From sequence record NC_043427.1: 24,893 nt of DNA. The stretch is one strand, 5' to 3'. The position numbers and the translations under genes were made by a program. Each line of letters opens with the position of its first letter. The stretch's first letter is position 1. Positions 3,741 through 24,577 of the stretch are shown one piece after another. A model generated the notes under the pieces. That model worked only from the letters and a program-made list of their open reading frames with translations. It was not told where the DNA came from and did not search any database.

Positions 3741-4526
3741 ATGAAGAGCGTTACGGCAGACCTTCCTTACCCCTACAAGTATGCTCATTGGCTCTGTGTA
3801 TCTATGAGAGCTAAGAGTATGAGTTATGAGGACAGGCTGGAGGCAGCCAGACAATGTTTAGCTGAGGGTAAGACGATAGGAATAGTAAACCTGTTTGGGC
3901 TCAAGCAGCCGTTGGACAGTCAGGGTTACAGGTACAGGTTTGACGGGGTTGCTTCAGTTGTTAGGAGGGATTCTAGGGTAGAGGTTGTTACTGAGAGGAG
4001 AGAGCGGGTTCCAGAGACGGTTTGGGAGAGGCTTGGTATGAGTGAGGAGCAGTACAGGCTGGGCATGAACTACTATAAAACTACTGCAAAAGAGCTGGCT
4101 GGAATATTTGATGTAAGCCTTGAGGAAGAGATTGAGAAGCTGTATAATAAGGCTTATGGGAGGATGACTCCTGAAGAGTTTGGAATAGAGCTTGCAAGGA
4201 TGATTAAGGACAGGCTTTTACAGCTTGTAAGAGAAGCTAGGAGGATGCAGGATGTTTTGAGAATGCTTGAGGAGAGGTATGGCATTAGGCTAGGCATAGA
4301 GGAGCCAACCGAGTTCATAAGGATTGTGGAGGAGGCTAGCCCTAGCAGCGTTATATCAATCCTATTCAAGGAGAACATCTACCAGATTGTCAGGTGGTAT
4401 AACAGGTTGAAGCGTGTTACAGAGCATGTCGAAGTTATAGAGAAGGCTGAGGAGTCTCTGAGGACAGGGAAGCTGCTAGTATCAGAGGAGGAGCTGAAAA
4501 GCTGCTTGAGGGCCTCCCAGAGCTAA
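3741..4526 (+). CDS. Hypothetical protein with N-terminal His/Cys domain (paralog of 24377-24577) and helical C-terminus; 3' end possibly frameshifted
   Basis: ATG 3741 follows GGGGTG; DLPYPYKYAHWLCV...AARQCLAEGKTIGIV aligns with the 24377 ORF. Confidence 0.75.
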   Translation: MKSVTADLPYPYKYAHWLCVSMRAKSMSYEDRLEAARQCLAEGKTIGIVNLFGLKQPLDSQGYRYRFDGVASVVRRDSRVEVVTERRERVPETVWERLGMSEEQYRLGMNYYKTTAKELAGIFDVSLEEEIEKLYNKAYGRMTPEEFGIELARMIKDRLLQLVREARRMQDVLRMLEERYGIRLGIEEPTEFIRIVEEASPSSVISILFKENIYQIVRWYNRLKRVTEHVEVIEKAEESLRTGKLLVSEEELKSCLRASQS

Positions 4527-4605
4527 GGGCAAGGTATGAGAGGCTATTACAGCAGTTTAAGGGAGGGCATACAGGTTTGAGATTCCAGGCTATGCTGTCG
4601 AGGAC

Positions 4606-5829
4606 TTGAATCATGTCTTTAGTATTAGTGGTGGGGATGTGTTTATAGTTCCATCTAGCTATGAAGTAGCATTTGTAACTCTCAACCCTGAATATACTGT
4701 AGCACTTGCCCTCTACCTCGACGTGAAGGTCGAGGGAACACCATTCCCCGTGAAGATTAGTAATGAGATAGTGCTAGAGCCGGGAGAGGTGGAGGTTAGG
4801 GAGAAGGCTGGGGTAGTAGAGGTTGTAGTAGCAGGAAGGAAGTACAGTGGTGCTCTGGCAAATCCAGAAGAGATACTGATGCCAGCGAAATTTGAAACAG
4901 TAGACATGCTCACAATTAGAGTTGATGTTGATGTGTTGAGGCTCATGAGGGACGTTAATACTGTAGCTTTATCGCTTGATGAGGATGTAGGCCTTGCTGA
5001 AGGAGACAACTGGGCTGTCATCGAGTTTGACAAGGATGGCAAGTTTGAGGCCGAGGCAGTGTTTCACGGTCGCTGGATAAGGCAGGCAGTACCTCCGAGC
5101 GTGTTTAGGGCGAGGAAGGATACAGTAACTATGAGGATTGCAAGGGATAGGCCTGTTATAGTTGAGGGTTATACTAGAGCTGGGCAACGGTTTGTTGCTG
5201 CAATAGGGCAATCTGTCGAGTCCCCAGGAATCCCATCAAGGTTCATATATCTTGAGCCAGAGTACATGAGGCCTAGTGAGCTCCTAGGCGTGCTTGAACT
5301 TGCATTTGATGTGGTGCTAGACTATTATAGCATATATGGAGTATTTACGCATTATGATTTCTTCAGTATAGGGCTCTCTAAAGGGGCTTCAGGAAGGTAC
5401 AGGTTGAGGCATAGCTTGCATGTGCCCAGGCCTATTAAGAGGGCAGTTGATATTGCAGGGGGGCTTCAAGCAGCACCGAGAGACGGTGTTTTAGACGTTA
5501 ATGGAGCCTTGCTAGAAGAGGTTGAGGAGCTACCTCGGGACATAGCAGAGGCAAAGGCTAGAGTAGAGGAGTATCAAATAGTTGAGGTATTCAACGTTAG
5601 AACGAAAGTGGATAGAGCTGAAATCAGGGATGGGGAGTTAATACTGTACAAGGGGAGGAGCGAGGTTCTAAGGATAAGCGTGCCTATATCAGGGGACTTT
5701 AGATTCGATAGCGAGCTGATACGGTACTTCACTCCAGGGGGGATAACGTTGATGGAGAGGGATGGGGAAGTTGCGTTGAGGTTTGAGAAGAGCTATAACA
5801 CATGGCTATTCGTGGAGGGGGTGAGATAA
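4606..5829 (+). CDS. PCNA/sliding-clamp-like protein, apparently two clamp-like units in tandem
   Basis: VAFVTLNPEYTVALALYL, RKYSGALANPEEILMP, LAEGDNWAVIEF and EAVFHGRWIRQAV...DTVTMRIARDRPVIVEG follow the archaeal PCNA motif order; the frame is open from 4561. Confidence 0.6.
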   Translation: MNHVFSISGGDVFIVPSSYEVAFVTLNPEYTVALALYLDVKVEGTPFPVKISNEIVLEPGEVEVREKAGVVEVVVAGRKYSGALANPEEILMPAKFETVDMLTIRVDVDVLRLMRDVNTVALSLDEDVGLAEGDNWAVIEFDKDGKFEAEAVFHGRWIRQAVPPSVFRARKDTVTMRIARDRPVIVEGYTRAGQRFVAAIGQSVESPGIPSRFIYLEPEYMRPSELLGVLELAFDVVLDYYSIYGVFTHYDFFSIGLSKGASGRYRLRHSLHVPRPIKRAVDIAGGLQAAPRDGVLDVNGALLEEVEELPRDIAEAKARVEEYQIVEVFNVRTKVDRAEIRDGELILYKGRSEVLRISVPISGDFRFDSELIRYFTPGGITLMERDGEVALRFEKSYNTWLFVEGVR

Positions 5830-6293
5830 TGAACATAACTATGGAGGACATACAAAGGTTTATGGTTGGCTCGATAGGGATAGCTCTGATAGTTGCTATG
5901 GCAACGTTCATGAGAGAGGCTTTACTAGGTGATGAGCAGCCAAAGAAAACAGTTAGGGTTGTCCCTGGGGATGCTGCTTCTGCAATCCACGAGGTCCTAA
6001 GCACTAATGGCTATGTTTACATTGCAGTTGGGGAGGGGTGCAGCTACTGTCCAATAGCGTATTCAATGGTTGAGCTTGCTGGGATTCCAGTGAGAAAGAT
6101 AGTTGATATAAGGAACCTTAGAGACGAGGATGAAGTATGGAAGTTTGCAAGGACAGTTGGCATATCATCTGCTCCAGCACTTCTTCTTGTCGAGGATGGC
6201 AGGGTTGTAAGGGTTATAGAGTTCTCTGGGGATGTTGAAAAGGATAGGGAGGAGATTAAACGTGAGAAAGCTTATCTTGGGGCTGCATTCTAA
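5829..6293 (+). CDS. Membrane-anchored thioredoxin/glutaredoxin-fold protein
   Basis: N-terminal hydrophobic helix, CSYC(P) CxxC, cis-Pro loop GISSAPALLLVEDG. Confidence 0.85.
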   Translation: MNITMEDIQRFMVGSIGIALIVAMATFMREALLGDEQPKKTVRVVPGDAASAIHEVLSTNGYVYIAVGEGCSYCPIAYSMVELAGIPVRKIVDIRNLRDEDEVWKFARTVGISSAPALLLVEDGRVVRVIEFSGDVEKDREEIKREKAYLGAAF

Positions 6294-24136: not shown

Positions 24137-24398
24137 AGAGCTAAAACAGAGAATTATGAAGGTCTTGCAGAACGGGAGCAAGACTCTTGTCGAGGTTCAT
24201 TTTTTAGTTGAGAAGACTGGCTTCGTTGTTTCTTACAGGCGTCTCAAGCTGGTTGTTGACGAGATGGTTCAATCTGGGCTTATAGAAAAAATGAGGGACG
24301 GAAAAAAGGTAAAGTATAAGATAAAAGAAGGGCAGCATAAGATATGGCTCGAATACCCCTGGAGAGGTGAGGAAGAGTGGGCAAGTATGCGACTCTAA
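24093..24398 (+). CDS. Winged-helix DNA-binding protein
   Basis: RIMKVLQNGSKTLVEV...LKLVVDEMVQSGLIEKMRDGKKVKYKI. Confidence 0.8.
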   Translation: MGLKLEPAVTAASDEELKQRIMKVLQNGSKTLVEVHFLVEKTGFVVSYRRLKLVVDEMVQSGLIEKMRDGKKVKYKIKEGQHKIWLEYPWRGEEEWASMRL

Positions 24399-24577
24399 CA
24401 CAGGACCTTCCCGAGGAGTACAGGAAGGCTCACCCCATATGTGTGGCTAGTAAAGTGGCCAAAATGGGCTACGAGCCTGCAAGGGCTCCTAGGGACGTGA
24501 GGCAGAGAGCAGCCGAGGAGTGTATAAGGGAGGGCAAGCTGCACGGCATAGTGAAGCTGCTAAGCCCCTCGGTTTGA
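24377..24577 (+). CDS. Stand-alone His/Cys domain protein (paralog of the 3741 N-terminus)
   Basis: DLPEEYRKAHPICVASKVAKMGYE...RAAEECIREGKLHGIV; GAGGTGAGG RBS. Confidence 0.8.
   Translation: MGKYATLTQDLPEEYRKAHPICVASKVAKMGYEPARAPRDVRQRAAEECIREGKLHGIVKLLSPSV

Follow-up and report, generated by a model that had tools for sequence, protein, structure and literature searches.

A candidate clamp-fold protein with remote similarity to PCNA in Aeropyrum coil-shaped virus, probably encoded by one gene that the database entry divides into ORF10 and ORF11

ORF11 of Aeropyrum coil-shaped virus (ACV) may encode the clamp-fold portion of a ~696-codon protein specific to spiraviruses, in which residues 73–217 would be a very remote homologue of PCNA and the last ~110 residues a further clamp-type domain; we give this reading an even chance of being right. 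The window analysed here, 24,893 nucleotides in length, equals the full ACV genome (HE681887). To our knowledge, this 24.9-kb genome is the largest known for an ssDNA virus, and neither a Rep nor a polymerase nor any other replication protein has been recognised in it. ORF11 (CDS 11-407; positions 4606–5829 on the plus strand, with the stop codon TAA at 5827–5829) is annotated as a hypothetical protein, and its entry in BFVD (J7QC59) is also uncharacterised. The original prediction had described two fused PCNA-like protomers in the frame that opens at 4561, and had noted that no such gene belongs to the ACV annotation. The latter statement was confirmed: neither the annotation nor the ICTV summary contains a PCNA-like gene, and no clamp loader is encoded by ACV according to its annotation. 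A full-text search for Spiraviridae together with PCNA, the reach of which did not extend to the original description of ACV, returned no clamp claim.

The strongest evidence comes from profile–profile comparison of the first 217 residues counted from position 4561, a segment (the N-half) of the right size for a two-domain PCNA protomer. An N-half profile of two sequences (ACV and its homologue P0002) was aligned by hhalign to a profile of 22 PCNA sequences over 140 columns with a score of 40.7, an E-value of 1.7e-5 and a probability of 78.3%, the target being a single, hypothesis-driven family, such that another family might in principle score higher. The alignment is collinear and pairs ORF11 residues 73–217 (positions 4777–5211, plus strand) with residues 84–245 of Pfu PCNA at ~16% identity, running from the end of PCNA domain 1 across the interdomain linker and through the whole of domain 2 as far as the ‘LAP’ motif. 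Among 200 shuffles the mean score was 14.8 (sd 2.7) and the maximum 26.0, the reversed query scored 14.8, and the maximum of an earlier control of 120 shuffles was 26.9; the real score stands ~9 sd above shuffles. Two cases of true but undetectable kinship serve as yardsticks: the two domains of PCNA, compared with each other, score 19.2, and a comparison of PCNA with E. coli DnaN scores 18.6. The score increases with profile diversity. Diverse PCNA profiles gave scores of 39–41 (probability 73–78%, E 2–3e-5), always collinear with PCNA residues ~83–245; the same alignment was obtained with three other PCNA subsets, among them a profile of Pfu, DPANN and viral PCNAs (score 39.1) and one of eight viral PCNAs alone (score 33.5, E 2.9e-4), and the score went down to 20 with a narrow profile of Pfu PCNA and 11 closely related DPANN sequences. 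ACV and P0002 each separately pick the same PCNA region (P0002 alone scores 27.9), combining both raises the score, and ORF11 is the top scorer against the PCNA profile among the ACV proteins. The similarity of the N-half to PCNA is collinear and above chance, and these comparisons support a PCNA-type clamp relationship that is weak but reproducible.

Conventional searches did not assign ORF11 to the PCNA family. Neither PF00705 (PCNA_N) nor PF02747 (PCNA_C) was recovered: HMMER scans of the whole protein and of four pieces against Pfam returned no match even at E ≤ 10, scans of NCBIfam, PHROGs and PADLOC returned no meaningful match and no PCNA, and BLASTP of ORF11 against Pfu PCNA gave non-significant E-values of 0.3–0.7. 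Phmmer and hmmsearch of the PDB with ORF11, N-half and C-half profiles found nothing relevant; in the positive control, phmmer with Pfu PCNA retrieved 99 PDB clamp sequences. An exhaustive phmmer search identified P0002, from a Guaymas Basin metagenome, as the single true homologue of ORF11 (E 1e-8; 27% identical across 343 residues of the query, aa 48–390). A further match from this search, P0003, was rejected as a false positive, being a eukaryotic zinc-finger repeat protein. Word-indexed searches with ORF11, P0002 and their alignment yielded self matches only, IMG/VR scans yielded ACV itself and nothing else, and a first metagenome scan with ORF11 patterns yielded no match. P0002 and the protein of a third family member, L017, were scanned likewise against Pfam, NCBIfam, PHROGs and PADLOC, with nothing meaningful beyond weak, coiled-coil-type noise in the P0002 linker. 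By hhalign, the L017 protein gave no signal to PCNA, DnaN or the ORF11 family downstream of its ORF10-like part, yet clamp-like motifs are visible in it by eye.

The resemblance of the first ~200 residues to PCNA, which the original prediction had read from motifs occurring in order, therefore holds at the profile–profile level and is invisible to BLASTP and HMMER. At the level of single motifs, hhalign reproduced two of the three proposed equivalences, LAEGDNWAVIEF and EAVFHGRWIRQAV...DTVTMRIARDRPVIVEG; the first, VAFVTLNPEY, was left unaligned or set one strand later in PCNA, and residues ~99–115 were aligned with the PCNA linker region. AlphaFold2 models, built on a two-sequence alignment, predict a β-α-β-β-β-α-β-β-β order of secondary structure for residues 116–215 at pLDDT <50, too low a confidence to confirm the PCNA fold there. 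The ORF11 protein is acidic overall (pI 4.97, as compared with 4.6 for Pfu PCNA). Both homologues carry basic residues at R127, R130, R174, R183, R185, K186, K293 and R294, and conserved basic residues sit on predicted helices 123–131 and 170–186, the latter with five K/R and no D/E. The models thus hint at the positive helices on an otherwise acidic body that characterise clamps, weakly so because the helix positions derive from low-confidence models and the hhalign alignment.

A second line of evidence comes from the predicted structure of the C-terminal domain (aa 313–422; 5497–5826, plus strand), modelled by AlphaFold2 as a long helix followed by five β-strands, an α-helix and three β-strands. 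Confidence is confined to the last ~95 residues (pLDDT block means of 77–91 for aa ~338–407 in the C-half model). When the C-half model was compared with the PDB by Foldseek, ~36 of the top 50 matches were β clamps, PCNA or 9-1-1 proteins, all of them sub-threshold; the best, E. coli β, had an E-value of 0.045 and a probability of 0.57, and TM was ≤0.33 for clamp matches over the whole C-half model. In BFVD the self hit was followed by phage β-clamp and PCNA entries with probabilities up to 0.82 and E ≥ 0.07, and the self hit alone reached E ≤ 0.001 in either database. The longest C-half alignments are to three-domain β clamps. A Foldseek search with the full-length model (mean pLDDT 44.5) was uninformative because of that low confidence and was set aside. 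These models suggest a clamp-type domain at the ORF11 C-terminus. The middle region (aa 218–312; 5212–5496, plus strand), with pLDDT mostly <50 in both models, may be a degenerate clamp-like domain, as it aligns collinearly, at a marginal score, with domain 1 of the N-half by hhalign; it shows no hhalign signal to PCNA. Such a signal is also absent from the C-half, and no part of ORF11 gives one to E. coli DnaN, a comparison in which PCNA is equally silent. Between N-half and C-half, hhalign gave a score of 23.4 (E 0.011) collinear over ~167 columns, with 100 shuffles at ≤21.0 and a reversed control at 21.3, and BLASTP gave a non-significant E of 0.34 over 8 residues; judged from these scores, the similarity between the halves is only suggestive. 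The idea that the second half repeats the pattern of the first consequently finds its evidence in the predicted structure of the last ~95–110 residues only, and not in BLASTP or in hhalign against PCNA. Structural modelling of the two halves, the check proposed for a clamp fold, yielded a clamp-like but sub-threshold C-terminal part and an N-half with pLDDT <50. What speaks for a clamp fold is accordingly divided between the hhalign signal of the N-half to PCNA and the clamps that Foldseek finds, below threshold, at the C-terminus.

The N-half begins upstream of the annotated gene. As originally predicted, the ORF11 frame is open from 4561, following a TAA at 4558–4560, and the stretch 4561–4605 (plus strand) adds 15 coding-like codons ahead of the annotated TTG start at 4606, with no ATG, GTG or TTG among them. 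By codon log-odds trained on ACV these codons score +11.0 (in-frame windows 6.5 ± 3.5, off-frame −7.6 ± 5.9), and the homologue aligns into them (RFEIP/RITIP, with R5, I8 and P9 invariant); the extension is very probably coding. AlphaFold2 places a strand at aa 4–9 with low confidence. The added codons would encode the opening strand and helix of the first clamp-like domain, which is complete only with a translation start ahead of the annotated TTG.

Immediately upstream lies ORF10 (10-261; 3741–4526, plus strand), composed of a conserved N-terminal domain of ~60 residues (about 3741–3950) followed by a helical, coiled-coil-like region. Residues 29–81 match the P0002 N-terminus at 68% identity (E 7e-24), and ORF10 shares 37% identity over 231 aligned residues with the 839-aa ORF of L017 (E 1e-34). 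In both relatives a single long ORF, of 690 aa (L018+L002) or 839 aa (L017), begins with the ORF10-type N-terminal domain. The N-terminal motif of the family, LPYPY[KR]YAHWLC...SYEDRLEAA, is highly conserved. Across the ORF10/ORF11 junction (4497–4567, plus strand), codon usage follows the coding signal from the ORF10 frame through a bridging frame into the ORF11 frame by two −1 frame changes, one at an A-run (4497–4500) and one at G-runs (4561–4563 and 4565–4567). The last 10 codons of the ORF10 frame before its stop have a codon log-odds of −6.3, and the bridging frame, open over 4451–4606, contains 21 codons at 4499–4561 that score +12.2. From these sequence features, ORF10 and ORF11 are probably one gene of ~696 codons that the database entry splits in two, and ORF11 is most likely the C-terminal two-thirds of its product and not a stand-alone gene, a point missed by the original prediction. 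Two programmed −1 ribosomal frameshifts ~65 nt apart were judged unlikely, as neither site carries a classical slippery heptamer.

The annotation may nevertheless be right in treating ORF10 and ORF11 as separate genes in ACV with a TTG start at 4606, the fusion in the relatives being either lineage-specific or ancestral with a later split. The deposited sequence carries stops in all three frames across the junction, the TTG at 4606 is canonical, the bridging peptide has no significant BLASTP match to P0002, and gene fission and fusion are common in viruses. Such an arrangement would, however, leave coding-like scores running without a gap along frames 0, 2 and 1, with both frame changes at homopolymer runs, and a strongly coding-like stretch aligned with the homologue just outside the gene; the start at 4606 would also cost the predicted domain its first strand and half of its first helix. 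The agreement in length (696 versus 690 codons) and the fact that neither relative is split also argue for one gene, and we consider separate genes somewhat unlikely.

The neighbourhood of the putative fused gene is partly conserved. The start of ORF12 (5829–6293, plus strand), which encodes a membrane-anchored thioredoxin-like protein, overlaps the ORF11 stop in the sequence TAATG, and an ORF12 homologue (30% identity, E 4e-8) is found 4 nt past the stop of the long ORF in a relative. ORF56 (66 aa; 24377–24577, plus strand) is a stand-alone paralogue of the ORF10 N-terminal domain (BLASTP 40% identity, E 2e-11) that is matched by the N-termini of the relatives too. Scans for DNA repeats, promoters and terminators around ORF11 revealed nothing above chance.

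A more fundamental alternative is that ORF11 is no clamp, the PCNA likeness being a convergent or chance match between alternating β/α amphipathic patterns, and that ORF10-11 is specific to its lineage and plays some unrelated part, for example in virion assembly, in the terminal appendage or in interaction with the host envelope together with the neighbouring membrane thioredoxins. Every standard search was empty, the hhalign probability is at most 78% and the signal is lost with a narrow profile, Foldseek E-values exceed 0.01 throughout the PDB, AlphaFold2 can hallucinate common α/β topologies from two sequences, the conserved neighbour is a thioredoxin-like membrane protein and not a replication gene, and L017 carries no clamp signal. 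Coincidence would, however, have to account for two independent methods converging, in two parts of the protein, on the same fold that had been predicted beforehand. It would also have to produce a score ~9 sd above shuffles that grows with profile diversity, independent hits of both homologues to the same PCNA segment, and the prevalence of clamps (~36 of 50) among the top PDB matches. We therefore regard the absence of a clamp as unlikely, while leaving it a real share of the probability.

If ORF11 does adopt a clamp fold, its closest known counterparts share some of its features and differ in others. The helix–strand pattern of domain 2 in the alignment, the C-terminal ‘..LAP’ strand (YLAPS in the relative) and the acidic character with basic helices resemble archaeal and eukaryotic PCNA (e.g. 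P. furiosus, PDB 1GE8). In contrast to PCNA, a protein of ~250 aa, the ORF11 protein has ~420 aa (probably ~696 with ORF10), possesses an additional C-terminal half and lacks HMMER or BLAST similarity. In the phage and archaeal-virus collection searched, genuine PCNA genes were confined to dsDNA viruses that infect halophiles and methanogens. The clamp homologues of archaeal viruses (PhiCh1, phiH, CGphi46, HSTV-1, HHTV-1, HFTV1, HATV-3 and a Methanomicrobiales virus) are ordinary two-domain PCNAs of ~240 aa with 24–34% identity to Pfu PCNA, from dsDNA viruses of Euryarchaeota, whereas ACV has an ssDNA genome and a crenarchaeal host, and its protein has diverged much further and is ~three times as long. 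HCIV-1 VP1 (gene 9, 1608 aa) also harbours a PCNA-like module within a far larger viral protein, but that segment is readily found by tblastn (25% identity, E 2e-8), and the remainder is unrelated to ORF10/11 as far as tested. For the C-half model, Foldseek ranks DnaN and phage β-like clamps highest (E. coli β in the PDB, phage PolIII-beta-like proteins in BFVD), and a three-domain single chain is one possible architecture for ORF11, although in sequence the N-half resembles PCNA.

The herpesvirus processivity factors UL42, UL44 and BMRF1 are likewise clamp-fold proteins so diverged that structure alone reveals their kinship; these clamps form no closed rings, use no loaders and bind DNA directly (PMC4889955). 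They always occur alongside a viral polymerase (PMC4889955), which ACV does not have. Viral PCNA homologues that stand alone, with no viral polymerase, are also known (PMC4889955). Herpesvirus factors are, by analogy, the likeliest functional parallel for a virus without a clamp loader. ORF11 could then be a clamp fold that closes no ring, acting, without a loader and by direct binding to DNA, as a processivity factor or tether much like monomeric UL42 or the C-shaped UL44 dimer; the ORF10 coiled coil might mediate its dimerisation, and with only three clamp domains it could form a β-clamp-like homodimer. ACV lacks a clamp loader, and loader-less viral clamps are typically open, direct DNA binders (PMC4889955). 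Consistent with such a form are also the conserved basic residues on predicted helices, the coiled-coil-like linker upstream and the three-domain β clamps in the longest Foldseek alignments. Host RFC could, however, load a viral clamp, and the structural models are too poor for counting domains or viewing interfaces, which leads us to rate this open form as distinctly unlikely.

The weakest reading is the original one, in which two PCNA protomers, duplicated in tandem and fused (four domains), close a six-domain ring with one host subunit and hijack the replisome. In its favour, the N-half is PCNA-like, the C-terminus has a clamp-like domain, the score between the halves exceeds all 100 shuffles, and crenarchaeal PCNAs, including those of A. 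pernix, are heterotrimers; we nevertheless consider it very improbable, given that the halves are marginally similar with a reversed control close to the real score, that the C-half is silent against PCNA, that residues 218–312 seem too short, or too degenerate, to make up a complete clamp domain, and that the probable ORF10 fusion with its coiled-coil-like linker suggests self-association rather than a 1:1 host complex. The ring and clean tandem-duplicate claims are left unsupported because the half-to-half similarity is only suggestive.

The data presented above have led us to propose a model, centred on a clamp-fold protein with a remote PCNA relationship, in which the product that the ACV entry shows as ORF10 and ORF11, parted by two −1 frame changes at homopolymer runs, would be a virus-encoded DNA clamp or processivity-type tether. 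Domain 1 would be made complete by residues 1–72, among them those from the 15 codons ahead of the annotated start; the clamp domains would number three or four. Conserved basic helices on the acidic body would face the DNA, and clamp surfaces would recruit the host PCNA-interacting enzymes PolB, FEN1 and ligase to the viral template, while the N-terminal domain (present as the free paralogue ORF56) and the coiled-coil-like linker would serve in targeting and/or dimerisation. The rudivirus SIRV2 faces the same problem of bringing the host replisome to viral DNA, and its proteins bind host PCNA (PMC6105669); SIRV2 recruits the host clamp, whereas ACV may carry a clamp-like protein of its own. 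A bolder version, which we consider a long shot, is that ACV and its Guaymas Basin relatives possess a single-chain clamp in which three or four clamp domains are joined to a targeting domain and a coiled coil. Such a device would work without viral polymerase, Rep or clamp loader, either as a ring with a host PCNA subunit or as an open C-clamp.

These results bear on the annotation and on the biology of the spiraviruses. Since ORF10 and ORF11 are probably one gene, the reference annotation would be corrected, and syntenic relatives in Guaymas Basin sediments mean that ACV can no longer be regarded as lacking known relatives. If the clamp-fold reading is true, the protein would be the first candidate replication protein of ACV and a concrete handle on its replication mechanism, and virus-encoded clamps would be extended to crenarchaeal and ssDNA viruses. 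Such a clamp would explain how a 24.9-kb ssDNA virus without Rep or polymerase engages the host replisome, and the single-chain device, if real, would be the key to a so far unrecognised mode of replication of the largest ssDNA virus genome.

Over the 2.5 kb compared, the sequence matches HE681887 / NC_043427 at 100% identity, which identifies it as the circular ssDNA genome (24,893 nt) of Aeropyrum coil-shaped virus (ACV; Alphaspiravirus yamagawaense). According to its ICTV profile, ACV has no known relatives and encodes a protease, a recombinase, thioredoxins, sugar enzymes and DNA-binding proteins, while lacking an identifiable polymerase or Rep and probably needing the host replisome for replication. 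GC skew is positive in all 1-kb windows (0.10–0.36) with no switch point, indicating a G-rich packaged coding strand along the whole genome. ORF11 (CDS "11-407", 4606–5829, plus strand), annotated "hypothetical protein", lies between ORF10 (3741–4526), also annotated hypothetical, and the thioredoxin-like ORF12/13. As originally described, it ends in a TAA at 5827–5829 and its frame is open from 4561, behind a TAA at 4558–4560; this frame has no ATG, GTG or TTG within 4561–4605, which leaves the TTG at 4606 as the annotated start.

The original prediction held that ORF11 encodes a divergent, apparently tandem-duplicated PCNA-like clamp. Judged by standard similarity searches, this resemblance is not distinguishable from chance. 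ORF11 and its pieces matched nothing in Pfam, NCBIfam, PHROGs or PADLOC, phmmer found no match among PDB sequences, and BLASTP against Pyrococcus furiosus (Pfu) PCNA gave E values of 0.3–0.7 only; as a positive control, 99 distinct PDB clamp sequences were recovered with Pfu PCNA as query. BLASTP between the N-half (aa 1–217, counted from 4561) and the C-half (aa 218–422) returned a sole match, FVTLNPEY / FIYLEPEY (E 0.34).

An exhaustive phmmer search across 1.84 billion representatives identified P0002 (672 aa, E 1.2e-8) as the one true relative, with 27% identity across ORF11 aa 48–390; the second match, P0003, was disregarded as a eukaryotic zinc-finger repeat protein. P0002 is encoded on a 2.3-kb contig (L002, 2329 nt) of JGI metagenome 3300014911, sampled from Guaymas Basin hydrothermal sediment (PMC6478937). 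It is a fusion of an ORF10-like start (68% identity to ORF10 over the first 53 residues, E 7e-24), a coiled-coil-like middle and an ORF11-like stretch of the last ~450 residues. A scan for the conserved N-terminal motif yielded two further contigs from the same sample. L018 (8.5 kb; 8508 nt) shares an exact 123-nt overlap with L002, completing the gene at 690 aa. L017 (3074 nt) carries at 245–2764 a third family member, one ORF of 839 aa, whose first ~220 residues match ORF10 (E 1e-34) and whose last ~600 aa show no detectable similarity to ORF11, P0002, PCNA or DnaN; its C-terminal end looks clamp-like by eye only (e.g. ...DLYLVVPYRD). Together, L018 and L002 carry homologues of ACV ORF55, 56, 57 (minus strand), 2, 3, 10+11 and 12 in the ACV circular order, but with ORF4–9 missing. 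Uncultivated relatives of ACV exist. A protein of 209 aa encoded at L018 4611–5240, with no counterpart in ACV, recalls Cas4-type PD-(D/E)xK nucleases in its cysteine pattern and motifs, as judged by eye only. Because the ORF11 stop and ORF12 start overlap (TAATG, window 5826–5832) and the downstream membrane-anchored CxxC thioredoxin-like gene is also kept in the relative (L002 2053–2062), co-expression of the two genes is suggested.

In the relatives, the ORF10 and ORF11 homologues form a single continuous ORF. Codon log-odds scoring, with the 54 remaining ACV genes as training set, revealed a coding signal that passes gaplessly across three frames: first the ORF10 frame, up to ~4493, with coding character lost ~10 codons ahead of its stop (−6.3); a third frame, open over 4451–4606 and coding-like across 4499–4561 (+12.2, 21 codons); and the ORF11 frame, strongly coding-like from 4561 (+11.0, 15 codons). 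Both frame changes fall at homopolymer runs (A4 at 4497–4500; G3 at 4561–4563 and 4565–4567), and 3741–5829 read across them gives 696 codons against 690 in the relative. The homologue alignment extends into 4561–4605, where a low-pLDDT model also places the first strand and helix of domain 1. This evidence makes it quite likely that ORF10 and ORF11 are one gene of ~696 codons, probably split by the reference annotation. Miscalled homopolymers or genuine mutations would account for its interruption in the deposited sequence, and double recoding at the junction seems unlikely. The ORF10 N-terminal domain (3741–3950) has a stand-alone 66-aa paralogue in ORF56 (24377–24577; 40% identity, E 2e-11), and the shared domain matches no known family.

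Similarity to PCNA emerged from profile–profile comparison. A query profile of two sequences, ACV and P0002, was aligned by hhalign in a hypothesis-driven comparison with PCNA as the sole family. The PCNA alignments drew on Pfu (1GE8), human (exact against 1AXC) and yeast (exact against 1PLQ) PCNA, 11 DPANN archaeal PCNAs from genome contigs and 8 archaeal-virus PCNAs. Against the first 14-sequence profile the family scored 36.6 (probability 41%, E 2.7e-4), compared with 19.3 and 18.1 for the reversed query and target and a maximum of 26.9 in 120 column or block shuffles (mean 15, sd 2.7). The score fell to 20 when the profile was cut to Pfu and closely related DPANN sequences, and the signal returned, larger, with more diverse profiles: the N-half scored 39.1 (E 3.2e-5, probability 73%) against Pfu, DPANN and the 8 viral sequences, 40.7 (E 1.7e-5, 78%) against all 22 and 33.5 (E 2.9e-4, 40%) against the viral sequences alone. 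The null matched to the 22-sequence profile peaked at 26.0 over 200 shuffles (mean 14.8, sd 2.7), and the reversed query scored 14.8. The alignment was constant across profiles, pairing ORF11 aa ~73–223 with PCNA ~83–245, and the same PCNA region was picked by ACV alone (22–25 over 83–122 columns) and P0002 alone (27.9). ORF11 was the highest scorer among ACV proteins, and two true, ancient relationships, PCNA domain 1 with domain 2 (19.2) and PCNA with E. coli DnaN (18.6), scored below it. With the 22-sequence profile, DVLRLMRD of ORF11 pairs with the first helix of PCNA domain 2, HGRWIRQAVPPSVFRARK with the second helix, TVTMRIARDRPVIVEGY with the two strands that follow it, and FVAAIGQ (YLAPS in P0002) with the C-terminal LLAPR strand. 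Two of the three motif equivalences originally proposed were thus reproduced; that of VAFVTLNPEY with ISMRAMDPSR was not.

Structure prediction addressed the other end of the protein. From a two-sequence alignment, AlphaFold2 modelled the full-length protein poorly (mean pLDDT 44.5), with confidence only for the last ~90 residues, and Foldseek on this model was uninformative. Modelled separately, the C-half (aa 218–422) reached pLDDT block means of 77–91 for its last ~95 residues, in the order long helix, five strands, short helix, three strands, the order seen in a clamp domain beginning at its alphaA. Foldseek placed the E. coli beta clamp first in the PDB (E 0.045, probability 0.57), and ~36 of the 50 top matches were beta clamps, PCNAs or 9-1-1 subunits. 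In BFVD, two uncharacterised proteins of Tenacibaculum phages (E 0.007 and 0.015) ranked directly below the self entry J7QC59 ("uncharacterized"), ahead of phage PolIII-beta-like clamps, a T4-type sliding clamp and giant-virus and iridovirus PCNAs (probabilities up to 0.8). Apart from the self entry, no match in either database passed a conventional threshold; coming from an all-fold search, another part of the protein and another method, the clamp matches nonetheless point to the same fold. The two halves aligned collinearly and marginally in hhalign (23.4, against a shuffle maximum of 21.0 and 21.3 for the reversed control), and aa 218–312 had no interpretable fold in either model. The architecture first envisaged, a ring completed by one host subunit and a fusion of two protomers, is very improbable.

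A DNA-clamp fold is probably present in at least part of the ORF11 protein, and ORF11 most likely supplies the clamp-fold part of a larger protein specific to spiraviruses, whose mass would be roughly 77 kDa as estimated from 696 codons. The order of that protein would be an N-terminal domain, a coiled-coil-like linker, a PCNA-like two-domain module, a middle region and a C-terminal clamp-type domain. The ORF11 protein resembles clamps in being acidic (pI 5.0) and in having conserved basic residues on its predicted helices. A role for it as DNA clamp or replisome tether is a more tentative proposal. Viral PCNA homologues standing alone, without a viral polymerase, exist, and herpesvirus clamps are open and loader-independent (PMC4889955); rudiviruses recruit host PCNA (PMC6105669). 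A precedent for a PCNA-like segment inside a large viral protein is the 1608-aa VP1 of the sphaerolipovirus HCIV-1 (gene 9; KT809302.1 3472–8298), annotated 'hypothetical' or 'head protein', in which the segment lies at 4561–5280 (25% identity to Pfu PCNA, E 2e-8). PCNA-like genes were also seen on a 2.5-kb contig labelled 'Burkholderia sp.' MAG (JASLEG010000379.1, 25% identity) and a 295-kb contig labelled 'bacterium' MAG (DAIQOR010000001.1, 38%), both of which are probably archaeal or eukaryotic/viral DNA that was mis-binned or mislabelled.

The ORF11 protein is uncharacterised in GenBank and BFVD, and no link between Spiraviridae and clamps was found in the literature searched, a scope outside which the original 2012 ACV paper lay. 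If the assignment is true, ORF11 would be a new, extremely diverged viral clamp homologue. Such a homologue would bear on how ACV replicates.
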